DNA from: Tubulanus polymorphus
Taxonomy: Eukaryota; Animalia; Nemertea
DNA length: 64,000 nucleotides
Direction: 5' to 3'
Assembly (NCBI RefSeq): GCF_964204645.1
Contig: NC_134031.1
Span: forward strand, 17,719,807 to 17,783,806
The translations under genes were made by a program, and so were the position numbers. Below, piece by piece: positions 613 through 33,811 of the stretch. Each line of letters opens with the position of its first letter. Within the stretch, counting starts at the first letter, position 1. The notes under the pieces were generated by a model. It was given only the letters and a program-made list of their open reading frames with translations, ran no database searches and was not told where the DNA came from.

Positions 613-1280
613 ATGAGTAAATTCAAACAGTTTCTGTTCATGTCTTACGTATTTGACTGTCTTAATTGATTGGATTCTTTACTGATCAAGTCAGGGAAAA
701 CAACGTAGATGTCAGGGAATAAATAGTCAGCTAAAAAGCGGGTCCAATATAACCCCGTTAAACGAGCAAGGCAGAAAACCCGTTATCGCTGCTTCGCAGC
801 TATATTATATTTTCATCATTGATTTTTTCAGAGGATGAAGATCTGCCGACCTCTACGCGACCGCGACGTTGTCGAACATTGTCGTCATCGATGGCGAAAC
901 TGCGGCCGGCGCGGCGGAGGGTGAACGCCAAACGGTCGCCGCCGCCGCTCCCACCACCACTTCCGTCGAAAGACAAAAACGGTTTCAAACTGGTCTCCGA
1001 GTTCATTTTAGAAAACTCGCACAATAAAATGGAAAAGACGACGCCGCTGTTGTGCGGCGCGAAAATCGTCAAATGCGCGTACTGCGACAAACCGTTCTCG
1101 ACCAATCAGAACAAAGTGATCCACGAACGCATTCACCTCGGCATCAAACCGTACGAGTGTCAAATATGCCATCGATTCTTCACTCACGCCAGTAACTATA
1201 AGCGCCACCTACGAACGATGCACGCCGTCGAAAATAAAATCATCGATTCTACGGAGCATTATCGGTTCATCAAAGATTGA
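613..1280 (+). CDS. Small C2H2 zinc-finger protein with two fingers. Main coding exon 832-1280; candidate first coding piece ATGA at 613-616.
   Basis: The ORF holds CAYC-x12-HERIH and CQIC-x12-HLRTMH joined by a Kruppel-type linker (HLGIKPYEC, a TGEKPY variant). Acceptor ttttttcag ends at 831 (phase 1). ATGA|gtaaat at 613-622 would splice in frame to give MKDEDLP..., but the true upstream exon could lie elsewhere. Confidence 0.8.
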
Positions 1281-7810: not shown

Positions 7811-9724
7811 TCAATTTCTGATTTTGCCGTTGGGACCGGGTGTCGTTCCGAGGACGATTGGTCCCCCAGTTGGTCGTGGTGTGGTTGTTGCCGCATTCTG
7901 TGGACACGGTGTTCCCAGAATAGGCTGGCAAGGTTCTGCTGTGGTAAATGGTTCAACTGTTGACGTGCCAGGTTTGATTCCTGGCTTGATTGCGTTCGTT
8001 GCTGGTAAGATTCCTGGTTTAGTTGCTGGTACAACCGGTTCAACTGCTGGTTTAGTTGCTGGTACAACCGGTACAACTACTGGTTTAGTTGCTGGTACAA
8101 CTGGTACAACTGCTGGTTTAGTTGCTGGTACAACCAGTACCACTGCTGGTTTGGTTGCTGGTACAACCGGTACAACTGCTGGTTTAGTTGCTGGTACAAC
8201 CGGTACAACTGCTGGTTTGGTTGCTGATACAACCGGTACGACTGCTGGTTTGGTTGCTGGTACAACCGGTACAACTGCTGGTTTAGTTGCTGGTACAAAC
8301 GGTACAACTGCTGGTTTAGTTGCTGGTACAACCGGTACAACTGCTGGTTTTGTTGCTGGTACAACCGGTACAACTGCTGGTTTAGTCGCTGGTACAACCG
8401 GTACAACTACTGGTTTAGTTGCTGGTACAACTGGTAGAACCGCTGGTTTGGTTGCTGGTACACCTTCTGGTTTAGTTGCTAGTTCACCTGCTGGTGTAGT
8501 TGCTGGTTTAATTCCTGGTTTAGTTTCTGGTGCAAGTGCTTGTTCTGTTGCTGATGCAACTGCTGGTTTAGAAACTGATACATTTACTGGTTTAGTCGCT
8601 GGTACAACCGGTAGAACTGCTGGTTTAGTTGCTGGTACAACCGGTAGAACTGCTGGTTTAGTTGCTGGTACAGTTACTGGTTTAGTTGCTGGTACAACTG
8701 GTAGAACTGCTGGTTTAGTTGCTGGTACAACTGGTAGAACTGCTGGTTTAGTTGCTGGTACAACCGGTAGAACTGCTGGTTTAGTTGCTGGTACAGTTCC
8801 TGGTTTAGTTGCTGGTACAACTGGTAGAACTGCTGGTTTAGTCGTCGGTACAACCGGGACAACTGCTGGTTTAGTTGCTGGTACAGTTCCTGGTTTAGTT
8901 GCTGGTACAAATGGTACAACTGCTGGTTTAGTTGCTGATACTGGTTTAGTTCCTGTTACGATTTCTGCTCCAGTTGCTGGTACAACTGGTACAACCGCTG
9001 GTTTAGTTGCCGGTATAACTACTGGTTTAGTTGCTAGTACGTCTGCTGGTGTAGTTGCTGGTTTAATTCCTGGTTTAGTTTCAGGCGCAAGTGCTGGTTC
9101 TGTTGCTGGTACAACTGCTGGTTTAGTCGCTGATACATTTGCTGGTTTTGCTTCTGGTTTAGTTGCTGGTACGATTCCTGGTGCGATTCCTGGTTTTGTC
9201 ACAGGGACAACCTCTGGTTTAACGATTGGTAGAATTGATGGACATGGCTTCCCCGGTTTACATGGTTTTATTACAGCAATGGCCGGACATGGTTTTCCGG
9301 GTTTGCACTGCGTCTTGACACCGGGTTTCAATATTCGGTGAACTTTGATTTTTTTCGCTTTCTTGCAAGCGATCGCGAAAGTCCCCACGACTGATATATC
9401 TTTGCCTTTCTTCGTTTTACCTTTAACGTGGAATTTGCGCAACGAACGCTCTCCTACGAACAACACATCATCATCGACATCATCTTCATCGAAATCATCA
9501 TCATCATCATCGTCGTCGTCATCATCATCATCGTCGAAGGCTTTTTTTATGATACCACAATCGATCGTTAATCTACCAACAACTATAACTTCCTTGTCGT
9601 CTGCCGATTGTGATTTTGCTAAGGCGGTGTCGCCGATTGTATCTATTTCATCGTCCAACTTATCGGCGCTGGACGATACGATAAACAATGTGAGTATACA
9701 AACAATCCAACCGGTATTAGACAT
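7811..9724 (-). CDS. Secreted repetitive structural protein (mucin/glue-like), 637 aa, single exon
   Basis: N-terminal signal peptide (MSNTGWIVCILTLFIVSSSA), poly-Asp tract, Lys-rich segment, two CKPGKPCP motifs, many PATKPAV(V/L)PVV repeats, and C-terminal PCQPILGTPCP. TATAAAA lies about 90 bp upstream of the ATG. Confidence 0.85.
   Translation of the reverse strand: MSNTGWIVCILTLFIVSSSADKLDDEIDTIGDTALAKSQSADDKEVIVVGRLTIDCGIIKKAFDDDDDDDDDDDDDDFDEDDVDDDVLFVGERSLRKFHVKGKTKKGKDISVVGTFAIACKKAKKIKVHRILKPGVKTQCKPGKPCPAIAVIKPCKPGKPCPSILPIVKPEVVPVTKPGIAPGIVPATKPEAKPANVSATKPAVVPATEPALAPETKPGIKPATTPADVLATKPVVIPATKPAVVPVVPATGAEIVTGTKPVSATKPAVVPFVPATKPGTVPATKPAVVPVVPTTKPAVLPVVPATKPGTVPATKPAVLPVVPATKPAVLPVVPATKPAVLPVVPATKPVTVPATKPAVLPVVPATKPAVLPVVPATKPVNVSVSKPAVASATEQALAPETKPGIKPATTPAGELATKPEGVPATKPAVLPVVPATKPVVVPVVPATKPAVVPVVPATKPAVVPVVPATKPAVVPFVPATKPAVVPVVPATKPAVVPVVSATKPAVVPVVPATKPAVVPVVPATKPAVVLVVPATKPAVVPVVPATKPVVVPVVPATKPAVEPVVPATKPGILPATNAIKPGIKPGTSTVEPFTTAEPCQPILGTPCPQNAATTTPRPTGGPIVLGTTPGPNGKIRN
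8010..9170. repeat. Coding minisatellite, main unit 33 bp (11 aa) with 24-bp variants
   Basis: Tandem TGGTTTAGTTGCTGGTACAACCGGTA(C/G)AACTGC units are directly visible. Confidence 0.95.
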
Positions 9725-10701: not shown

Positions 10702-11931
10702 CTAATTCCAGCCACCGTTTGCGGCATTACTAGCTCGGCGTATGCTCGCTGCTGCTGGTGGTGGTGGTGGTGGAGGTGGTGTGGTTGGAATGCTACTCGA
10801 TCGTTTAGGGCTCAAACTCTTCGCTGATTCTCGGTTTAAATCGAACCCGACCGATATCGGTTTGTAACTGATGCGCCTACTGCTCGAAGCTGATTGCGAT
10901 GGCTTTTCGTACACTTCGAATGATGACTCGCTGTCTATCTCATCGATGTCGTCAAACAATCCCTTGCGTTGCTCGTCTAATTCTCTTTCTTCGGTTGACG
11001 GGGTACTTTTGGTCGGACACGCTCCGAAGAGCCAAGCTGTAGACGGACATTCTGGATCACCTTTTTCCAGCGCCGAGACGACGGCGGTTTGCAAGAATCT
11101 AGCCACAAATATTCCGATTACACGAATAACGAATATGCCGACGATTATTCCGCCGGCGGTCAGCAACATTTGCTCGAAATAAGTCATAATCGCATCGCGG
11201 CATCCCCTCATGTGTAACGTTGTCTGTTTTCGATAGTCGTAATTGTGGTGATACTTGTTCTCTTGTACTCGATGGTGAATGCACGGACGTCTAGATTTCA
11301 CGCTACAGCAACTGAAAGGCACGTCATCCGGCAAAAACTTTCCATCGGCCATCTTGCTCTTCGCATAAGTTGACAGCATGTCGACGTACACCTCGCTGAC
11401 CCACGGTACGTTGAACCAATCGGTATAGAACTCACCGCCACAGCATTCGTAATCCATCTGCGTCTGGTCAATTACGATTTTGATATGTTTCGTCGTCTTG
11501 TATTTCTTCATCGCATCCAGAATTCCGTGGGTAAATGAATGATGAAGGTGCTGGATGTGCGCGAAGGCTAACATTCCTGATGCGAATATGAAAATTGCCA
11601 GCACGATGTCGACACAAATAAACGGCAACAGAAATTGTTTTATCGTGTTGCGTCTTTCGGGGTTTTGTGTCAATATTCCCAAAACGAATCCCAACGCATT
11701 GATAATCAATGAAGCCAACGCAACTGCAATGACCATCCAAGGAAGCGTGTCGCTATTGTACTTATCCACTAAATTTATCTTTTCTTCCAGTGCTAATTTT
11801 ATGTATGTTCCCATAGCCAACAGCCCTATAGAGGCAGCGCAGCCGAATCCATTGAAAACTATGAAAGCGATGCATAATTTGTTCCGACCTTGCTCCGTCA
11901 CTTGTAATTCCAAACAACGTTTTTGTTCCAT
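10702..11931 (-). CDS. PRPH2-like: Peripherin-2/ROM1 (RDS)-like tetraspanin, 409 aa, intronless
   Basis: Four hydrophobic segments. The large loop IDQTQMDYECCG..YTDWFNVPWVSEVYVD..DDVPFSCC..RPCIHH..HHNYDY..LHMRGCRDAIMTY and the post-TM4 RFLQT..AWLF match the recalled RDS/peripherin subfamily (IDMLQIEFKCCG..RDWFEIQWISNRYLD..DGVPFSCC..RPCIQY..RGCRAALLSY..RYLQT..GWLL). Confidence 0.92.
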   Translation of the reverse strand: MEQKRCLELQVTEQGRNKLCIAFIVFNGFGCAASIGLLAMGTYIKLALEEKINLVDKYNSDTLPWMVIAVALASLIINALGFVLGILTQNPERRNTIKQFLLPFICVDIVLAIFIFASGMLAFAHIQHLHHSFTHGILDAMKKYKTTKHIKIVIDQTQMDYECCGGEFYTDWFNVPWVSEVYVDMLSTYAKSKMADGKFLPDDVPFSCCSVKSRRPCIHHRVQENKYHHNYDYRKQTTLHMRGCRDAIMTYFEQMLLTAGGIIVGIFVIRVIGIFVARFLQTAVVSALEKGDPECPSTAWLFGACPTKSTPSTEERELDEQRKGLFDDIDEIDSESSFEVYEKPSQSASSSRRISYKPISVGFDLNRESAKSLSPKRSSSIPTTPPPPPPPPAAASIRRASNAANGGWN

Positions 11932-14859
11932 TATCCTATTTGTTTATTCCGGCAATTTTTATCATTTCAAATCATTTTTGTAAGTGTTTAAAACATCCAG
12001 AAATTACGATAAAAGCAACCGATTTTTAGTTGCTAATAGAAACGAGTGGTATTCTTACATAACTTTTCAGGCCTTTCACTAGTGGCAGTGGTTGTCTCCA
12101 CAGAGATCTCCGTCGCTCTACGATCCTAGTGTAACCTGTGGTATATCAGTCGCTAAGGTTCTTGTAAAATTCAGGCCTGTGGTCTTTATTTTCTTCATTT
12201 TCAATAACTTAACTCACTGCCGGCCTATTTATTTTGACGTAAGTTCTTGAATTGCTGTCATCACCGGGCCCGCACTCAGTCATACGTTTAAAGCACGTAT
12301 TTCATTTCCTAACAGGCCCCGCCTGTAGTGCCTCAGAAAACCCCCAAATACGATTTCATAACTCGTCTATTTCGTCCATTCGTCAAACAACTTACCTTAG
12401 AAATTTCGTCAATTCGTCACTCGTCAATTGAACTTCACGAACCAAACTTTTGAATTGTTTCGTTTATGAATTCATATCTGGATCAAGAGAGTCAAAACAC
12501 CACTACAAAATTGAAAAAAATTTCGAAAGCCGAATTTTTATCGAATAACCTATATGACGTTTGATGATAGGAATTCTTAATTAATCAGGCGGCAAAAAAT
12601 GTATACATAGATAACACTTTTTGAGCCCACTTGACAGATTCATTCCGCGGACGTTACGTAGCCTGATACCGTAATTCTACGTGACAACATATTTAGCTTG
12701 GAAACGTATAGATGGCGATGTGTATGCTTTAGCCGTTTCAATTCAAATTTGTTTAGATGTCGCCGCGAACGTGCGTGAATGAAAAAACAACTGTTTGGCG
12801 GAAAATTGCGTTTGATTAATCTACATTGTATATTACATTTTACATATCTATTTCAATAGGCAAATCAAATATTTGGGTACGGTGCCAACAGAATGAGGCT
12901 TATAGCGGACCCTTGTAGCTCTTGCCGAATTCATTTCTTTCGGGGTTAGAGAATTAACTATGAAGAAATGCTACAAAACAAAAATTAGATGGATTTAATC
13001 TGAGGATTAAATAATTAATTACCCTATTTACCCTTGACTGCGTTCAAGTAGGCCAGGCCTACTAAGGCTATTGATAAATTACATTACATCACGTGGCACA
13101 TCAAGCTGTTTTCGAGTTATTATTTTTTTCGTTTTAGCCAAAAGCTACTCTTTGACGACACGGCAGCTGCTAGTTTTAAGCTCGTATTGTCATTTTGGTT
13201 ATGTGGAGCAAAATGTGTGTCCTTTAGTCATTGTTCCCCTTAGTTTTTGCAGGTTTTGGGGGGCATATGTCGCCTTTATTCTGTTATGATGTAACACGGG
13301 ACATCAATAAAAACACGTTATATGGCCTAGCTTCTGCTTTTTTTCCGTCCGAACAAAGACCGATCACCGTTGACCCAGTTGGTCTCTGAAATGGCCACAA
13401 AAACCCGCTTACCATAAATTATCATACCAATGATTCAAGGACAAATTACGTCATAGAGGGCAATTTTTTACTCTTCTCAGAACGTATTTTTATCCTAGAA
13501 CACATCGAAATCGAGGCTATATTCAGTGCATTGAGTGGCACACGTGACATACAAATCAAGGCCACTTGTGTCTCGCTTATCTGAGTCTGAACTGAATTAT
13601 TTCCAAGGGCAATTTATGATGAGATACTACTTTCCTTTTCACAACATTAAAAGAACTCACAGCGGATTCCAACGAAGCGTATCTATTGCTATACGCTAAT
13701 CACAAAATTCGCGAAAAGGTTGGTATTTATATATATATATATATATACAGGCTTACGCTTATTTGCTATTCAAGGGTCAATGTCTTTTTTCGATCAATAC
13801 AATTCGATCTCGGAAAGTCGGGTCGATACCCTTGAAACGAGTATTTGATTAGCGTTCTAATGGCGTGATGCATATGGGTACATATGATATAGTCAGGTAA
13901 CCTAGTGAGATTTTAATATACGTATTTTTTATAAACTTATAAAATATCGAGTCTCGCAGATCTGTAATAGGCCCAAAAAGTATGTGAATGAAATATTTTT
14001 CGTTTAAAGACAGACGACAGAAGACTGTGAGATTCGCTGGAAATGAATGTTTTGTCTTATACAGAAATCCGCACTAATTCCTGTTTAAAAATCGAACATT
14101 ACGCCTGAAATCGTGTTAAAATGCAAATAAAACGGCATCATATATCACCAACAGCAAACTCACACTGCTTGGATGGTTCGAATGAAAACCGCTATAACCC
14201 AGTGATCGTCGCATTGGATATAATTTACCGCACAATTTTATCAAATATTTTTGATTTGAGTTTATCAAACTTGATATCGTAACTTACTAGGGAGATCTGT
14301 ACCGATATGTCTAAGTTTGTACTGGATTTTTCCTGGGTCTAACAATATTAAGTCTATATATTGTGTAATCTAAATATTTCCGAAAAGCTTTTCTCAAAGC
14401 TGTAACTGATCCTTAACGAATAACGTGGAAAATTTTTTTTTCGAAAAGTGGCGCCATCTTGATCGATATAGCAGCGTAGATGTATTTTTCCCTCTCATCG
14501 CGTCGGGCATTACCCTCAGCCATGCGGTTGCCAAAGGGAAACACGTGGCAAGAAATTGTGACGCAGAATGAATATCCATATGAAAACCTTTAGATTGCGC
14601 TTTATTGAGAATAAACACTAAAAACTTATCAGAACAATTTCAACACGACTGTTGAGATAGGAACAATTTAAAAGTGCCATTTTTGAACTTTTTTTAGTAT
14701 GCGGAAATGTTATGATATATACATATTTATATATTAGTATATCCCAACAACACCCTCGCACTGGTGTCGTCGAACTCAGAAACGCTTCTGCTGTTACAAC
14801 AGTACTAACTATAACTCCGACGACAACGTTTAGTCTTAAAATCCGTATGCAAACATACT

Positions 14860-14891
<32 letters not shown>

Positions 14892-14987
14892 AAGCAACTA
14901 TAATCAAAAACATTTGAATCTTAGCCCGAGCACCGAGCACGACCTGCATGCGCGCTGATTCATCAGAGACATATCAACGACATCAAC

Positions 14988-15107
14988 ATGATGGATTGTG
15001 ACCGTGATAATAATTTTCCATTCTCATTCACCTGGCAGTCAGAAACATTCAAATCATGTTTTTCTTACACAAACGAAGACGCGCGCAATACAACTTTTTC
15101 GTCGCAA
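14988..15107 (+). CDS. Candidate alternative first coding exon of the NR0B-like gene (40 codons)
   Basis: ATG at 14988 is open for exactly 120 nt to a consensus donor CAA|GTAAGT at 15108. Phase 0 joins the acceptor at 18039 in frame with the ATG at 18072. Confidence 0.35.
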
Positions 15108-15719
15108 GTAAGTGTATTTATTCAAACCAGGGAAATTAATCAAACGCTGTTGATATATTTCATTCATACTTATGTTACTTAAACGAAAACAAAGTTAAAC
15201 TTCTAGACTTTTTTTCTTTCCGGTTACTCATTTTCGAAATTTATATGAAACAATTCGACAATTCTCTAGAAATAAAGATTTTTTCCTGACGATTCGGTAA
15301 CTGACAATACGTCACTGGTCTGAATTTCTTTATGAAAAGATTGTTATTTTTGAATAATCGTACATAATCGTAAACAGAATTTTGTAAATCGGTTATTTGA
15401 AAAAAATGATAATTTGGGTCAAACAGGTTTTGGGGAAACCTAGAAAATTAGAAATAAACCAAAATCCTAATTTTCGTCGAGTATCAATAACTTTGATTTT
15501 AAAACTCCATCGAACGAACGAAAATCCAAGCATCTATCGACCTGTTTTCCGTTATATTAATTATTCTGAAAAGTTTCGATGATTTATGCGTCAAATTCTG
15601 ATATGTTTGAAGTTCCCTATTACGAGATAAATACTTATGCAATAATTTTCGATTAATACTACGGCGTGAATAAGCCGACCGTGCTGAGATGGTCCCCGCG
15701 ACGGAAATGGTTGTCTACG

Positions 15720-16062
15720 CGCTGATTGGTACGAGTCGCTCCGACGCCGTGGACTATTAATAGTGAGCCGCTTCAGTCTGTTCGCTCTCCCAAGGTCACT
15801 CACCCTACCAATTCAATGTCCTCGGCACGATTGTTGACGTCACGGAATACATATTCATGACGGTGCCGGATTGGCTGCCTTTTCTTATAGGAACTAGAAA
15901 CATGGGATCCATTGTTTTCAAGCCAGACCTAAACGAGTAAATAATGTGTAAAGGTCGATAACACTGACGCTGGCTACTGTCAATTAATCACATACTCCTA
16001 AACGGATTAATAGGATTCAGGATAGATTATTTTATTCAGAAGTGTATCAAATTGCTTCATCG
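15720..16062 (+). promoter_or_regulatory. Candidate promoter and non-coding first exon of the NR0B-like gene
   Basis: Several CCAAT/ATTGG boxes (about 15725, 15809, 15870), CCAAGGTCA at 15790-15798, TGACGTCA near 15835, locally higher GC, and a consensus donor CG|GTAAGT at 16063. Confidence 0.45.
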
Positions 16063-18071
16063 GTAAGTGTACTTTTTTATTTGGATGACCTCTATGTCTC
16101 AAATTCAGTCGCTGGACTTTGTTGTGTTCTACTTTTGAAATTATCAGTAAATTAAGGGCCCAAAATAAAATGGCATAATATAAACGTAAAATTCTATCTT
16201 TACCAATAGCAATGAATTATGATTTTGTTCTAATCTAATATTTGGATAAGTTAAGATATCAAATTCTATCATATATAAAGGTGCTAACAATTTTCCTCGT
16301 ACAAAATCTTTGTTTTCCCCGTGTATGCTACACTATTAACAGATAAACTAGTAAGCCTGTGAACTAATAATCTGAAGTTGATTGTTTTTTCTTATCATAT
16401 CGCATTCGAGATCTGCAGTTTATAATGCGCCTATAGAAATATTCTTTAGTCAGTTTGACATGTGTATCAATGGAGTTCAAAAATGGAACCGATCGTATTT
16501 TCATTTCTATCTTTCGATGATCATATATGATGATTCACCTTTTCTCGAACACCGTCTGTTTTGCGCTTCACTCCGGGCGTACGTATGACATCTTTATTCA
16601 ATAGGACAATGTGAAATTTGTGTAAGGTTGCCTCCCATCTTGCGAACAATGATTATCGTTTTTGTGTGGGATCTTTGTGTTCGTGCCCTTCAACAGTTAA
16701 CCTCTGTGACCCAGGCGACCTCTCCCCATTTCATTGTAATATGCCACGCGTCTTTTCTGTGTTTCTAAAAATATTTCGAATACCCCTCCCGAAAAGTGCG
16801 CCGCAGGCAGTTTCGTTTAATTGTTTTTTTTCATTCAATCTCTTTCAGTATATGTGCAGTTTTTGAGAAATGTTTTTATTACTCGTATACGAAATTCATA
16901 TGATTATATGCAGCTCAAAATATATCGGAAATATTAATGCGAAATTCTAATTGCATTATCCTATGGCCTTGGAAAGGTTAGCGACTCTTGAAGTGTTTTG
17001 CAACAGAATCGATATTGCGGTTCGCACTTTACCTAGGTCATTGTAGCCTGTGCACTTGAACAAGAATGAGAGCACCGTTAATTGATTATAACCCTGATAC
17101 AAAATTCTATATTCATATGTATATATATATATAAAGCAATCATTTCGCATGAGTGTACAATCTCAGAACTTCGTGGGCGCAACTCTCTCGGAAAAACCAC
17201 TTCCGCGATGTATCATGCGTCAGGAATGTCGTCTGGGTTCTACGAATTTCACTCGTAGATAAGTTTTTTATGATACGGAAGTTTATTATTAAATGCAATC
17301 CAACCAAAAATAGGGCTTGCCTTATGCCTCCATTTCTCATGATTTGATACTCGTATGAAAGATTACAATATGACACCCGCCCAATGACCTTGGTCGAGAA
17401 CTAGATTGGGATAGATTGAACGCTACGATTGAACGCCAAGCCACACAAATACACGTGGTACGTTTTCTAAAGTCCGGGATATTTTCCCGGAATTAAGCTG
17501 AAAATAGCACGAAAACAAACCAATACAACGCAATGTATTTTAGACGATATTTTCTATATCTGATTGTTCGCTATAATGAGGCCGTGGATGTAGTTCATAA
17601 ACTACTCCGCATAACTAAACTTAGCGAAACCGTTGAATAGAGTAATAACTCGACGTCGAATTTTTCTCGACCGTCCTTTATGCACCCCTGCGAGTTATGC
17701 TATATCGTTGTTTACTCCGTGAACGAAGAGGTCGTTTGCAGAATCAAGGTCGGCCTTTTATACACAGACTGTTTACAAACGTATCCTGTTACTGAACTAG
17801 GTTGAGAAATAGTTTGTTTTATTTGCGAGTAACCTTGCGAAAAATATAGCGCAGTATTGCATCACACGTGTTGGCTGCGCTTGAGCCGAGGCCAGGCGAT
17901 GCATTAATCATCCTGTCTGCCGATGGCATTCCAAAAAGCTAAAAGATATTTACGCGTAAAACAAATATCGCCGAAAGTGCGTTGTCCCTTCGCATCCGTG
18001 TTAACTTTAACCACCGTCTAATTCTTTGTATATTTTAGGTCAAGATAGGTTTTCCAAAGAGCAAAATCGCC

Positions 18072-20178
18072 ATGGACCCGTCATCGAACCGAGGCGGGGT
18101 GAACTGTGGAACAAACATACTCTCCGACCTGCTCAATAGAGGAAAAAACCAGTCGACAACACCTCCCCAACCGCAAAATGGATTTCAGAATAGTATCGAG
18201 TATAATTCGCAAAGATACCCGGGACCGGTCCCGACTACTGCTGTGGACGGGCGCCTTCCCTATCAAGGCTGGCCCATGATACCGTCGAACTATGGACCGT
18301 ACACGTGTCGGTCGTATTCATCCCGGGGAATCGTTTCCCAGGACATCGAAATGACAGACAATACTAGGATGCACTCGCAATTAATGAAACCAAGCGACGG
18401 CTATCAGCTGCAATCACCGGGACACCAACGACCTTTTGAACATTTGCCCTCTAAAAGGAATACGAATAACATTCAAATGGTGGATGGTAGTATCTTAGCG
18501 TCGAATGAAATGTACATGTCCAACGCTGTTTGTATGTACATGTCTTTAAGGAATAATAATCAGTCGCAGGTATCCCCTCCTATCAGTTACCATCAACGGG
18601 CGGCCTTGGAATCGGACTCGTTCGAAGTGAGAACGGCTAGTCGCGGAGAAAATCCTAGTCCCGACAAAACAGACGCCGATAGTGGAATATGCACGGATTC
18701 CGAACAGGACGAACCGATGGACCTGTCGTGTAAGCCGCGCGGCCCGTCGCCCGAATGCAGCCGAGAAGGCTATCGGGAGTCATCCTTCCCGCCCGAAGAT
18801 GAAGATAACAATTCAAACTCTTTACTACGAGGACTTTTGCTGCGCAGCCGAGATAAAAAACGCAGTGACTCGATCGGAGATTCGTTCCCGAATCCGAACG
18901 CTAAGGTTCGTCTGGCGAAGAAGAACTTGTTTCCAGTAAGCGCACGCGTCAGCGACTGGTTAGTGAAAATTGTGCAATTTGCCGATTCGATTCCCGAGTA
19001 TAAGTTACTGACGCAAAATGATCGGGTGACATTGATCCTCGGTTCTTGGTCCAGATTACTGTTGTTGTACATGGCCGAGAACAATTTCCACTTCGTCGTC
19101 AGTCCAGAATCGGTGGAGTCTCCGCGACCAGAGTCACCAGATCATCCTCGCGCCCAGTCACCATCACAAAGTACTCACATACCCAATACAGTACCGACCA
19201 TGAGATCTGTCGAAGTTCTACAAGGGCTTATTAGAAAGTACCAAAGCATGGGCTTGGACAGTCAAGAATACGAACTCATGAGAATTTCCATTTTATTCCA
19301 TAATGGTAAGTGTTTCTAACTTTTGCTCGATTGAGCTTTCTTGAAATAATATATAATGTATAAAAGTCATATCATGTCACGGAAATTTTTGCGGGTTCAC
19401 CTCCCCACTAATGACGTCATGCACAAGGTACTCATTGAAACAAATATCTTGCATATATTATATATATATATAAATATATATCAACTCGACCTGCCCTCTA
19501 CCCCACCTCATGCAGATCGTGTGTTTCTGGCGAATTCAAAAGTTCACCGAGTTCACGGCGAGCATGCGGTAAACCTCGCCAATATCAGCCGGCGTTCAAT
19601 AACATCGATTGACTGTTGCAACTCGCGGTATAGCCAGTTTATCCGTACTTTGGCGACAAAAGCTGCTGCCACAAATGACCATAGGTGACCGTATTGAATT
19701 TCGATGCGATTGTTAATAGCATGTCTAGTCGTTGGCTATTGTCGCTGGTATATTTCAGCCAGCAGGGTCATGTACCCTGCTTGACCCATGTGTTTGTAGA
19801 TAGATATAGATGTCATTGAAAACCGTTCGGTTATGAGCGGTCAGTTGATTCGAAGGCCATTGGGTCAGATGTACGCGTCACAATGGTGCGTTGACTTCGC
19901 CTTGTTTATCGCATGTCGAATTTCCTATATTTTCAGATGCCGCATTTTTAGAGAATCTGGACCTGATCGAGCGCGTAAGACGTAACGCCTTGGGATGCTT
20001 AGAACGACATGCCAATGCTGCCCGACGCGATGACGTCATGCATTATTCTAAACTCTTGATGTCACTGCCCACCCTCTACAGTATAGAACCGAAAATGGTC
20101 GAGCACTTGTTCTGTCGACACATAACCGGCAATATGGATGTAGCCGTTTTTATCAAAGAAATGTTGAAAAGTTTATAG
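18072..20178 (+). CDS. NR0B: Nuclear receptor lacking a DNA-binding domain, NR0B (DAX1/SHP)-like. Exons 18072-19305 and 19937-20178, 491 aa.
   Basis: Ligand-binding-domain signature WLVKIVQFADSIPEYKLLTQNDRVTLILGSWSRLLLLYMAE, then PTMRSVEVLQ, EYELMRISILFHN|D and VEHLFCRHITGNMDVAVFIKEML (compare recalled DAX1 [23 protein letters not shown]). No C4 zinc fingers seen upstream. Phase-1 intron gtaagt...ttttcag restores the frame. Confidence 0.88.
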
Positions 20179-20960
20179 TTTACACATAGCGACAGTTCTG
20201 AGGTTATAGCTGGTCCATTCAAAATGGGTCCAGAATGGGCCAAATGAATGAACATTTCCAAGCGCTACGGAAACAGCGTTCATAGCGAGGCACGTTGCTC
20301 GTGCGCGCACGTTTATATGACAATATTATGACAATGAAATTGTTAAAAAATGTATCACGCCTGCAGCCTTATACATTCCACAATCCTAGAATAATGTGGC
20401 GTGAACGGTGGTGATTTTTGTCGTAGAGAAAATGACGATACATTGTCAAACAAGGAAAAAACTGCACAGGTGCACGCATTTCTGCTTACATGAAGCGAAG
20501 GGCATTATAAAAATCATTTCCAAAATTAGATGCTTATGTTATCGATCGGTCAGTTATACGCATATTTGCATAGTTGAAACGACCGATGTAAAAAAAGGTT
20601 TGATTGCTTCGCAATTTTCTTAGACGTAATGTAAATAATATGTTTTATAGATTAGCCAGCATTTCATTTAACCGCAAAGAAATCTGGCAGTGAACAAGAT
20701 TTGACTTTGACTTCACAATTTTTCAACTGTTTAAACGTACAACGTATAATCGACGCCTCGTCAAAGCGATATCGTAATATTGAATATTGTAAAGATGCTT
20801 TTCGGAATGATCCCTAATGGCTCTACACACGGTGACAGGCGTCTGTGGCGAAAAGAATATTTTTTATAGATTGATATAAAATGCGTCTCTCCGGTGATAT
20901 TTAAGGCCCTGTAAACGGTAACATTGCTCATGTGCAATGTTTATTTTGAATACATTTGTA

Positions 20961-21007
20961 AAGAGAGAGAGAGAGAGGGGGGAGGAGAGAGAGGGGGGAG
21001 AGAGAGA
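20961..21007. repeat. (GA)n/G-rich simple repeat
   Basis: Directly visible purine tract in the presumed 3' UTR of the nuclear receptor. Confidence 0.85.
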
Positions 21008-24000
21008 TGTCGAGCAAAGAGTTTGTTAATCTCTTCTTTGAGAAGCGTCTCGTGCGTGTAATTCTAAGAAGTGCTAAAGATCATTTTTAATGAAATGCTT
21101 CTCCCGGTAAAATATTATACGTGCGGCTTCTTGTTGCGCCTATTTTTAGTCAGTGAATTATATCCGTATTTACGAATAGGATTTTTTTTTGTTTTTACAA
21201 TCGATTCTGCAGAGTAAATATATAAACGCGATAAGCCAACATTTCAGGTTTCGACTGTAAACGGCCAAGGTCTGTACTGCTTAAACGACAGCTTGTGCGT
21301 AATTTAGGTTAACTTTGCGTCGTTGATTTGAAAGTGTTGGCCACCAGCCCACTGTTCTGAAAGCAAATAAAACACAATAAAAATACGATGACATTCATTC
21401 ATTATCAATTATGAAAAGAAGTCGAGCGAATTTGAGTTTATTGAAGAATGCTAAGTGATCGACCAATATGTACATATATGAATTTAATTTATGAAATGCA
21501 CGTAGCGGGCTTTACCGAAAAAAAAGTATACGAGTTGTACATGTACGATGAAATTCGGTCAGCTCAATTTTTCGAGGATATCCGGCGGGTTCCGGGTAAA
21601 TGTTACATCGCGTGGTTCTCGGTGATTCAGAGCGCGTCGGTATTTGATACCGCATAACCTTCGTATCGGTTCTGTCGATTTGTCTATAGCCAAGCTTCGT
21701 GTTGCATATGCTGTTGTATATAATACGGTATCTAAGATGGAGACAAAAAAATGAACTGGAAATCTCGCGCTATCCAAAACGATCTAATCGTTGCGGTGTT
21801 TTCTCACAAATGTATTGAACCAATTTCTAATCAAATGTTACTTGAAACATTTCAGCATTTTTGTATTTACTGGGGATGAAATGTGTAAAAGTGCACTGCG
21901 ACTAAGTCGAAATTATTGAGGGTCGGTTGCCTCGTTTTTTATTTTACAATAAAATGGCCGACGAAGTTGGCTTCGTGCAGTAATTTTGCTTGTAAATTCG
22001 TTTTCTAAAGATTTATTGTCTTGGCTACGAGATTGTCATTTAGCTTAAGAAAACTCTAGACGTGATGCTGCTTGGGAATCATCGACTAATTGTATATACG
22101 CATTTTGTATGCATTACATATTATATATAAGGATAGCGAAAAGTAAGTTTATCTGTGGTTTTATAGGCAACCGACCGCTTAAAACAACATTTCATTTTTT
22201 CGTTGTTCGTTATAGAATTGTCCATGAAATGGTCAAAAAGTCGACACTAATAGTAAGGGTGATAATTATGATTATGATGATTATAATTCATTTGAAGCGT
22301 GAGTGTCATCTAACGGAAGCAGGGTTAGGCTTGTTATTACATTCGATGAAGTGCAGATCAACGCGTCAATAAATAAGAACTTGTGTGTGTGTGTATATTG
22401 TATAACGATTTAACGGAATTTGACGATTGTAATAATGATGTGATTTGTCGAATGTTGGTGAAAAAAAACATACTTCGTTTATGGATCTCTATCGTAGTTG
22501 TTCGTGTAAATAAATAAACAATTTTTGTATAAAAAGTACACCATAGATCATTCTCTTTTTTCTTTCTGTCTGCAGACGCGGGCGACTAGATAACAGACAC
22601 ACGCGCGACTTTATGAAAAAGATCAATCGTCGTTTGTTTCACCTTGGCGTAAAAATGGGACAGCTTCGCAAGCAAATGAAGTCATGAAACTTGTTTTGGC
22701 GTATGGTATTACGTACTTAGATATATTCATATACGATAGATTGTACATAAATCTATCTATCTGAATCACAGGAACTAAGGCCGCAGAACAAAGCGAAAAT
22801 ATATGCACTCAAACACACTTGCCACCGCAATATACGTGTATACGACATTCAAACTGAGGAGGAGTTAATAACCAGAGTGTTGTTCGACCTTAGGGGTCAG
22901 AACTTTCCTGACCGCGCATTGACATCGGCGTACTTGGTCAAAATGGACAATGGAAATAAGCGCTTGACCGATGGTGTCCATGGTACTTACTGAGAAATTT
23001 GCCACCGCATCATGACCGAACGTGTGAATATGTAGGCGGCCCCTCGGATTAAAAATGAAAGGGCACATAGATCTAATCAGACGACCCGGCCTTTTTATAG
23101 CATTTAAGTCTGTGCCGAACTATAGGGCCTATATAGTTCGACACAGACTAAAAACCTGTTCACCGAATCAATAACAATTCTGAATGAAAAATATGTCACA
23201 AATTCATGTATACAGCCTTGAAAAACCTGAACTAGAATTCTATGCAGCACAAATAAGTCGCGTTGCCAAAAGAATTAAAAACAGGATATCTATTTTGATC
23301 TACTTTCATCATACCAGCTTATCAATAAAACTATTGTTCACGTTACATTTAAATAGTGCACTAGACCCATATTTATAATGTACATATATATTGCTTTCCA
23401 TATTAGCCTGCGACATCTTGACGTCTAGTTATAGGGCGGTATGTTATTATGGGACAGCAGGCTTTATGGATAGAATTTGAGTCAGAGATTTGCTATCCAT
23501 GCAAATATAATTTGAAAATAACAATGTCAGATCATCAAGACAAAATTCAAAACCCAGTCACTTATTTGCTTATCCAAGCCAAGGTCACCATGCCTCATCC
23601 CGCAGAGAATATAAGAATACAAGTTGTTTTCGTCAAAATATGTTATTGAAGACTAAGAATGAGTAGACTTTTTAACGACGCCACCGCGGCTGTTTGTCAA
23701 GCGATCGACAAGGTCATACGTGACCTTAGTCTGTGTGGCAATATATCGTCTGATGTTCCATTGCAGACGACATTGCATAACTCAATTAATCTTAGATACA
23801 TTAGTCAGCTTAAAAATAGTTGACGTCGAAGTAAACTGTGCCAGACACACGATATGTGCATCCATCATCATTCATTTTTGTAGCCACATCACTCGGTTGC
23901 ATCTTGATCACGTCAACATTGCGCAACCCTCAAACACAAAACTAAAATTTACATCGCCTTTTATTGGATTCGTCGACCTTGTACGTATGTCTGGCAGTGC

Positions 24001-33300: not shown

Positions 33301-33811
33301 GGTAGTCTTTGATCGGTCGCATCGTTATCACGTTTCTGAAACACATGTCTAACGTCAATCGGCTGCGTAAAAATGTCGATTTCAAACTGTCAAGGTCGTC
33401 ATGACGCGTGCCCCGACGTCGTGAAAAACTATTAGTTAGACTCCATGACAACCGGGGTAATATTCCAACTGTTCAAAAATATAGAAATCATATTCTAGGG
33501 CTATCGACCTCGCGGACAATATGGATCGGATTACTTCGACTCTCCTTATAAATATTTCGGTCAAGTAGACACGTTTCCCGATAGCTGCCTGGTTTTTCAA
33601 ATATTCAAATGATCTCATTTTGGTTGCGCGAGCCAGAGCAAATCGTGTGGAGTGATGCTCTATGAGGTTCAATGATCACTGAATCAAAAACTCAAAAAGA
33701 TGTTGTCCCCAAAACATCCAACAACAGACGCGTTAGTTTCTGGAGGAAATCATATTTTCAATAATCCCCAACATCACCAATCATATAATATATGATTGGT
33801 TTTATTTATTT

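Follow-up and report, generated by a model that had tools for sequence, protein, structure and literature searches.

A cluster of NR5A-type sites (YCAAGGYCR) surrounds the gene for a nuclear receptor that lacks a DNA-binding domain (DBD) in a 64 kb stretch of the genome of the palaeonemertean Tubulanus polymorphus (C7:17719807-17783806, hereafter the window). The gene, LOC141909086, is the T. polymorphus ortholog of spiralian NR0B1/2, and comparable excesses of the sites are found at the NR0B loci of other spiralians. On the best-supported reading of these sequences, NR5A acts directly on spiralian nr0b by way of a maintained homotypic site cluster. NR5A input into nr0b appears well supported computationally, and repression of NR5A by NR0B would be expected from vertebrate precedent and from the transcripts altered in Platynereis mutants. 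Both the receptor that binds and the sign of the regulation are points that we infer.

Density and recurrence of NR5A-type sites

YCAAGGYCR has nine matches on the two strands of the window, compared to 2.07 expected from dinucleotide shuffles, and none of 100 shuffles reached nine. Site 1 (TCAAGGCCA, 13556..13564, plus strand) is located 1.4 kb upstream of the ATG of isoform X1, in an intergenic region common to nr0b and a divergent tetraspanin gene. Site 2 (CCAAGGTCA, 15790..15798, plus strand) belongs to a GC-rich, promoter-like patch (15680-15900) that also holds inverted CCAAT boxes and a cyclic AMP response element (CRE), approximately 270 nt before a strong splice donor at 16063. Sites 3 (CCAAGGCCA, 16964..16972) and 4 (CCAAGGTCA, 17385..17393) are on the minus strand, and site 5 (TCAAGGTCG, 17744..17752, plus strand) precedes the acceptor at 18038 by 287 nt. 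Match 6 (CCAAGGCCG, 18601..18609, minus strand) falls within a poorly conserved part of the coding exon and is possibly fortuitous, and site 7 (CCAAGGTCA, 23579..23587, plus strand) is 3.4 kb downstream of the stop codon. The two further matches are at 33390 (plus strand) and 49772 (minus strand). Eight of the nine had been listed in an earlier reading of the window (the original prediction), and all eight are present at the positions and on the strands given there; the list was incomplete in that 18601, on the minus strand inside the coding exon, had been overlooked. Five of the sites had been described as lying just upstream of the coding exon, a description in need of correction, since most of the sites are intronic to isoform X1: 15790, 16964, 17385 and 17744 are in its first intron or in putative alternative promoters.

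Six of the matches are contained in 5,054 bp (13556-18609) and seven in 10,032 bp (13556-23587). The background had been estimated at one chance hit per 30-35 kb, a figure that agrees with the shuffles; the real genome is denser, with 16,877 matches in 267.8 Mb, or one per 15.9 kb (the reversed control pattern has 11,400). At the real genome rate, the Poisson probability for a fixed window is P ~1.1e-6 for six matches in 5.05 kb (0.32 expected) and P ~4.6e-6 for seven in 10.03 kb, and in the whole genome chance would produce fewer than one comparable cluster. In twenty random 10 kb samples of the genome, specified beforehand, there were 0-3 matches each (mean 0.75), and among the matches listed, spanning 3.33 Mb of coordinates, there were at most three per 5.1 kb and four per 10 kb. 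The expectation that the cluster would stand above both the shuffled and the genome-wide background was confirmed.

An origin of the cluster from a repeat or transposon was rejected: the flanks of the sites are unrelated to one another and unique, the region 13400-18050 is single-copy, matching itself alone in the genome, and the only repeats close by are TA microsatellites. Location of the sites inside repeats, which would have undermined the original prediction, is thus not observed. No Rfam family was found in 13400-18050. The cluster is non-random, and there is strong reason to think that its sites are under selection.

Ten orthologous NR0B loci totalling 247 kb were compared: those of Tubulanus and Lineus, and eight further spiralian loci. 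The locus of Lineus longissimus (27.8 kb) has ten matches, compared to 1.3-1.5 expected, a number reached by none of 100 and none of 200 shuffles. Nine of these ten precede the main coding exon by no more than 10 kb and, as at the Tubulanus locus, are divided between the upstream DNA and the first intron. Alignment of the two nemerteans is confined to coding exons, and conserved positions are therefore not claimed for individual sites; the density of sites has been retained while the non-coding sequence turned over completely.

The other eight loci are each above expectation, with three matches compared to 1.03 expected in Owenia, four to 0.61 in Mytilus, three to 0.81 in Patella, two to 0.81 in Pinctada, four to 0.80 in a contig from ENA, five to 1.08 in Biomphalaria, five to 1.72 in Littorina and five to 1.18 in Haliotis. 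Together they possess 31 matches where 8.0 are expected (P ~6e-10). Over all ten loci there are 48 matches (~10 expected); column-permuted motifs averaged 7.7, none of 3,000 reached 48, and none of the 3,000 had two or more matches in even nine of the ten loci. In an unbiased scan of 7-mers at the two nemertean loci, CAAGGCC, CAAGGTC and CCAAGGT ranked first among the shared words once simple repeats and a single repeat word specific to Lineus were set aside, and the excess is therefore independent of the choice of motif in the original prediction. Conservation at related NR0B loci, proposed there as a check, is found in this form, as an excess that recurs at nine other spiralian loci.

An NR0B-like receptor

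Two open reading frames (ORFs; 18072-19319 and 19891-20178) each encode one half of a nuclear-receptor ligand-binding domain (LBD; PF00104). They are separated by an intron with a GTAAGT donor at 19306 and a ttttcag acceptor at 19936, in phase, and their 491-residue product matches the database entry for LOC141909086 isoform X2 exactly. The main exon (18039..19305, plus strand) follows an acceptor AG at 18037-18038, contains the isoform X2 ATG at 18072, and encodes the N-terminal region and LBD helices to about H7. The last coding exon (19937..20178, plus strand) encodes the LBD from ~H8 to H12, with an activation function 2 (AF-2)-like FIKEMLKSL and a stop codon at 20176-20178. Isoform X1 (542 aa) joins its first coding exon (14988..15107, plus strand, 40 codons, donor GTAAGT at 15108) to the strong acceptor at 18038, 33 nt before the isoform X2 ATG, and thereby adds 51 residues that do not form a DBD. 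Isoform X2 is carried under three accession numbers, perhaps a sign of multiple transcripts or of alternative 5' exons. A candidate non-coding exon ends at the GTAAGT donor at 16063, downstream of the GC-rich patch. The full-length proteins used are the database entries for isoforms X2 and X1. The LBD match is single-copy in the genome.

PF00104 matched exon 1 with 25.6 bits, above the cut-off, and its C-terminal part is on exon 2. No zf-C4 pattern of a C4 zinc-finger DBD was found in six frames of the 64 kb window, and the PF00105 match closest to the gene on this chromosome (C7:16.586 Mb) is over 1.1 Mb distant; on these two grounds, the possibility of a hidden DBD exon was rejected. All 77 of 77 homologs carry PF00104 only. 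These homologs come from nemerteans, an annelid, bivalves and gastropods, and some have NR0B1 as their source annotation. Among solved structures, the best match to exon 1 is mouse DAX-1 (3F5C chain B, E 1.8e-5), followed by USP, SHP and COUP-TFII, and the best matches to exon 2 are USP and RXR. A profile of twelve orthologs has COUP-TFII (95.7 bits) and DAX-1 (94.7 bits) as its top two, and in the ESM Atlas the PNR, NR0B2 and RXR clusters are level at 0.95. Because DAX-1 is best for exon 1, USP and RXR are best for exon 2, and COUP-TFII and DAX-1 are level, the sequence alone says 'NR0B or NR2-like'. The family itself has been described: oyster CgNR0B, without a DBD, was assigned to NR0B in 2014 (PMC4070562), a 2026 study concluded that vertebrate dax-1 and shp have one ortholog in Platynereis, nr0b1/2, and that arthropods and nematodes have lost the gene (PMC13012086), and published trees group annelid and mollusc members with NR0B (PMC13012086, PMC4070562). 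The Tubulanus gene is a nemertean member of this already published family, and invertebrate NR0B is not in itself new (PMC4070562, PMC13012086). The DBD-less, NR0B-like receptor of the original prediction is borne out by the presence of PF00104 only, the lack of zf-C4 in the window and the top or joint-top rank of the DAX-1 structure.

Conservation of motifs was assessed in an alignment of twelve spiralian NR0B orthologs, in which much of the LBD is invariant or nearly so, including its AF-2-like LLKEMLxxL end. An N-terminal nuclear-receptor (NR) box, ILSDLL (18117..18134, plus strand), is common to Lineus (ILSSLL) and Owenia (ILQTLL), and in the LxxLL-type NR box LLRGLLL (SLLRGLLL; 18822..18842, plus strand), L-R-x-L-L is invariant in the twelve orthologs. 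The NR boxes that the proposed circuit calls for are thus present as motifs, through which the protein would be predicted to dock onto other receptors. The sequence PMDLS (18714..18728, plus strand) fits the PxDLS consensus for binding of CtBP. Its P, D, L and S are invariant in the twelve orthologs, and it sits in a Q-x-E-P-(M/I)-D-L-S motif that is invariant in 12/12. No report linking NR0B proteins to CtBP was found in the literature.

The NR0B homolog of the ENA contig, which is of metagenome origin, differs in structure: it is one uninterrupted ORF (L050:10001-11530, 509 aa) without the LBD intron. A retrotransposon pol gene lies upstream of it, and the four NR5A-type sites on the contig are all downstream of the ORF. 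This homolog may be a retrocopy or may represent an intron-loss lineage.

Candidate readers of the sites and competing explanations

Among the 64 possible trinucleotide 5' extensions of AGGYCA at the ten loci, CCA is the most enriched (21 compared to 2.33 expected, 9-fold, P 1e-13), and TCA, ACA and GCA are also among the top five; AGGYCA half-sites without the CA extension are enriched only 1.43-fold. This specificity for a CA extension points to the monomer readers NR5A and ERR and away from receptors of the NR4A type (AAA) and the ROR/Rev-erb type (A/T-rich). The consensus of SF-1, LRH-1 and FTZ-F1 is YCAAGGYCA and that of ERR is TNAAGGTCA, the latter receptor recognizing extended half-sites such as TCAAGGTCA. 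Of the 48 sites, 27 have C at position 1 and 20 have an AGGCCA core; 7 are copies of the classic ERR element TCAAGGTCA, of which neither nemertean locus has any. Because C at position 1 and AGGCCA cores dominate and TCAAGGTCA is scarce, the profile fits NR5A better than ERR or a generic half-site factor.

The NR5A gene of T. polymorphus is at C7:16561260-16568172 (16.561-16.568 Mb); its DBD exon ends with CRFQKCLQVGMKLE, and the next exon carries a canonical FTZ-F1 box (C7:16566452-16568172). A second NR5-type DBD with an ESCKG P-box (C7:16585846-16586022), 18 kb from NR5A, has NR5A2 and SF-1 as its best matches. This second NR5-like gene is perhaps the HR39/NR5B ortholog, and no FTZ-F1 box was found for it in the 40 kb examined. 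Both genes are on the chromosome of NR0B, ~1.15 Mb from it. A compact ERR gene is found at C1:2.734 Mb (DBD 2734233, LBD 2736323). Another cluster of YCAAGGYCR matches (six in 19 kb, C1:2781513-2800546) is situated 45-65 kb downstream of the ERR gene. Autoregulation of nr5a is not indicated, as there is one YCAAGGYCR site in the NR5A gene's own 40 kb. An NR5-family receptor is probably the main reader of the sites.

The combined explanation that best accommodates these observations, and that is held to be somewhat probable, is that NR5A drives nr0b through the homotypic site cluster and that NR0B represses NR5A in a negative feedback. In such a circuit, the FTZ-F1 box of NR5A/FTZ-F1 would read the YCA extension, and the ESCKG P-box would read the AGGYCA half-site; NR5A would bind the YCAAGGYCR sites as a monomer and drive transcription of nr0b, probably with E-box and CRE factors. 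NR0B would then use its invariant LRxLL box to engage the AF-2 surface of NR5A, and perhaps that of ERR, and repress NR5A, possibly recruiting CtBP through the invariant PxDLS. The repression of NR5A would close a negative feedback loop as in vertebrates. The invertebrate NR5A-NR0B loop of the original prediction is supported in part, namely in its activation arm, by the excess of sites at ten loci, the CA-specific profile and the presence of NR5A and ERR genes; the full feedback loop could well operate, with the balance tipping slightly against it.

Vertebrate SHP offers a close precedent. At least five SF-1 sites are present in its promoter, SHP represses LRH-1, which is itself an activator of Shp, the relation with ERRgamma is of the same kind, and CLOCK-BMAL1 acts with LRH-1 on the SHP promoter (PMC3346990). 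As with SHP, a DBD-less NR0B gene is flanked in Tubulanus by multiple monomeric NR5A sites, the product has LxxLL-type boxes, and an E-box is next to an NR5A site, recalling the synergy of CLOCK-BMAL1 with LRH-1 (PMC3346990). In contrast to SHP, the Tubulanus circuit is known from sequence alone, its sites are spread over ~10 kb that include the first intron and alternative promoters, and its protein is DAX-1-sized and has a PxDLS motif. No report of PxDLS in SHP or DAX-1 was found in the literature, and the sequences of these two proteins were not checked. In DAX-1, which has been crystallised with LRH-1, LxxLL-type motifs of the N-terminal region replace the DBD (PMC5159745). DAX-1 (DAX-1:LRH-1, PDB 3F5C) is the best or joint-best solved-structure match to the Tubulanus LBD, but the similarity is weak (single-sequence E 1.8e-5) and level with COUP-TFII in the profile search, and the 65-67 aa N-terminal repeats of DAX-1 are lacking (Pfam: PF00104 only).

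Platynereis nr0b1/2 (PMC13012086) and oyster CgNR0B (PMC4070562) belong to the same family as the Tubulanus gene, being single-copy, with an LBD only and LxxLL-related motifs; the two papers describe no cis-regulatory NR5A sites and include no nemerteans. Among the transcripts most strongly regulated in nr0b1/2 mutants of Platynereis are nr5a1/2 and err, and nr0b1/2 itself is responsive to moon phase and to a cryptochrome that senses light (PMC13012086). The word 'promoter' has 0 occurrences in that paper and 'feedback' occurs in a reference title only (PMC13012086). The literature search returned no account of NR5A sites at the NR0B gene of any invertebrate.

Several observations weigh against a direct NR5A-nr0b circuit. 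The tie between COUP-TFII and DAX-1 leaves the family of the receptor, by sequence, at 'NR0B or NR2-like'; the second NR5-like receptor and ERR have overlapping sequence preferences; and the single YCAAGGYCR site near the NR5A gene gives no sign that nr5a regulates itself. Site 18601 is coding, and site 13556 could serve the divergent tetraspanin gene. Outside the nemerteans, the excess at each locus is modest (2 to 5 sites) and the background was taken from shuffles and permuted motifs; if that background is doubled, as the real rate in Tubulanus is relative to the shuffle rate, the eight loci still have P ~6e-4.

ERR (NR3B) might be the main reader of functional sites, in an ERR-to-NR0B loop like that of ERRgamma and SHP instead of one with NR5A. 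An ERR gene is present in the genome, the SHP promoter is activated by ERRgamma, which SHP represses (PMC3346990), and err transcripts change in Platynereis nr0b1/2 mutants (PMC13012086). However, the element TCAAGGTCA is found at neither nemertean locus and in only 7/48 sites overall, and the prevalence of C at position 1 (27/48) and of AGGCCA (20/48) brings the sites nearer to YCAAGGYCA than to TNAAGGTCA; this explanation is considered unlikely. To about the same low degree, the sites might be read by another NR5-class or half-site receptor, either the second NR5-like gene at C7:16.586 Mb, possibly HR39/NR5B, or GCNF/NR6A, with no feedback by NR0B. A second DBD with an ESCKG P-box 18 kb from NR5A would be available for this role, and FTZ-F1 alpha and beta of Drosophila compete for the same site, according to a title cited in PMC4070562. 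On the other hand, no FTZ-F1 box was found for the paralog in the 40 kb examined, the DR0 arrangement typical of GCNF was not seen in the contexts of the sites, and the conserved LRxLL box of NR0B argues for docking onto a nuclear receptor.

Two explanations that dispense with a receptor circuit at nr0b are less probable still. The cluster might be a chance or compositional artefact of a motif chosen post hoc in a word-rich regulatory region, given that the motif was picked after the gene had been recognized, that the genome-wide rate is twice the shuffle expectation, and that a second cluster exists (C1:2.78-2.80 Mb, six in 19 kb). This is largely refuted by the probability of ~1e-6 at the real genome rate, the replication of the excess in Lineus and at all eight other loci, the failure of all 3,000 permuted motifs to match it, the rank of the words at the top of the unbiased k-mer scan, and the location of one site in a conserved gastropod promoter block. 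It is equally improbable that the sites regulate the neighbouring tetraspanin gene (10702-11931, minus strand) instead of nr0b: site 13556 is 1.6 kb from the tetraspanin ATG in a common intergenic region, but five of the seven sites are inside the nr0b transcription unit or first intron, and the enrichment tracks nr0b where its neighbours are different, as in Owenia, where nr0b is flanked by exosome-component and Foie-gras genes.

Promoter modules, neighbouring genes and significance

An E-box CACGTG (13541..13546, unstranded) is located 9 nt before site 1. The sequence preceding site 13556 is CACACGTG, and the same core precedes an NR5A-type site in Littorina and Haliotis. A CRE palindrome, TGACGTCA (15835..15842, unstranded), starts 45 nt after the start of site 2. 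At the ten loci there are 40 copies of TGACGTCA compared to 3.0 expected (13-fold), and those in the window are at 15835, 19412, 20031 and 28318. The copy at 20031 arises from the coding stretch DDVMHY of the last exon, which is conserved in orthologs, and a coding origin is likewise probable for the copies that other species have at this position.

In three gastropods, a CRE starts directly after an NR5A-type site. Littorina (a caenogastropod) and Haliotis (a vetigastropod) have in common a block of ~60 nt, CACACGTGT-TTTGTTTGAC-ATC-YCAAGGYCR-TGACGTCAC...AAGCTCCGCCCT, which consists of an E-box (CACACGTG), a forkhead-like TTTGTTTGAC, YCAAGGYCR, a CRE (TGACGTCA) and a GC-box (GCTCCGCCC). The Haliotis block also has a TATA-like tatatata, and Biomphalaria keeps the site, CRE and GC-box (L052:3469-3530, L053:8409-8475 and L051:4123-4175 for Littorina, Haliotis and, in part, Biomphalaria). 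This footprint looks like a core promoter with the NR5A-type site inside it. The block was found through the adjacency of site and CRE; blastn-short among the ten loci returned mostly coding exons. In Patella (a gastropod) and Pinctada (a bivalve), TTCAAGGAAGT is followed after a spacer of 9-13 nt by CCAAGGTCA upstream of the NR0B ATG (L004:8685-8720 and L005:8548-8582); TTCAAGGAAGT is either an ETS-like GGAAGT or a degenerate NR5A site.

An E-box is found within 30 nt of 4/48 sites, compared to 1.2 expected (P ~0.03, weakly significant), and proximity to either an E-box or a CRE over the 48 sites is modest (P ~0.02-0.03). The case for E-box and CRE co-inputs is thus suggestive. A wider proposal, which is put forward tentatively, is that the loop with E-box (clock/USF) and CRE co-inputs is ancestral to bilaterians and predates the steroidogenic and bile-acid axes of vertebrates, with spiralian NR0B acting additionally through CtBP and PxDLS.

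The tetraspanin gene is an intronless ORF (10702-11931, minus strand; PF00335, E 8.5e-25) with a proline-rich tail, divergent from the NR0B gene and separated from it by a 3 kb intergenic region. Elsewhere in the window, a 637 aa ORF with no Pfam match (7811-9724, minus strand) consists mostly of a 33 nt (11 aa) tandem repeat of ~14-30 copies (8014-9200), which is followed by a (CAT)n run at 9466-9532. Matches of permuted motifs that were unique to Tubulanus are due to this repeat ORF. A fragment of a C2H2 zinc-finger ORF is located near the start of the window (819-1280, plus strand).

For a long time, DAX-1 and SHP were regarded as innovations of vertebrates, in which control of the two by SF-1 and LRH-1 is a textbook feedback motif of endocrine and metabolic regulation. 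The gene family was known from invertebrates; the conserved cis-regulatory signature at invertebrate nr0b is new, as far as the literature was searched. The regulation of spiralian NR0B genes had not been reported, although the genes are known and a Platynereis knockout exists. The idea can be tested directly in Platynereis or molluscs, for which the analysis nominates the E-box, the NR5A site, the CRE and a PxDLS/CtBP route of repression. The persistence of the signature in nemerteans, an annelid, bivalves and gastropods despite complete sequence turnover around it, together with its place in a conserved gastropod promoter, suggests that the wiring, and not the gene alone, is ancient. It further suggests that the link by which SF-1 and LRH-1 control DAX-1 and SHP in vertebrates may be much older than vertebrates, extending a known circuit to Spiralia.

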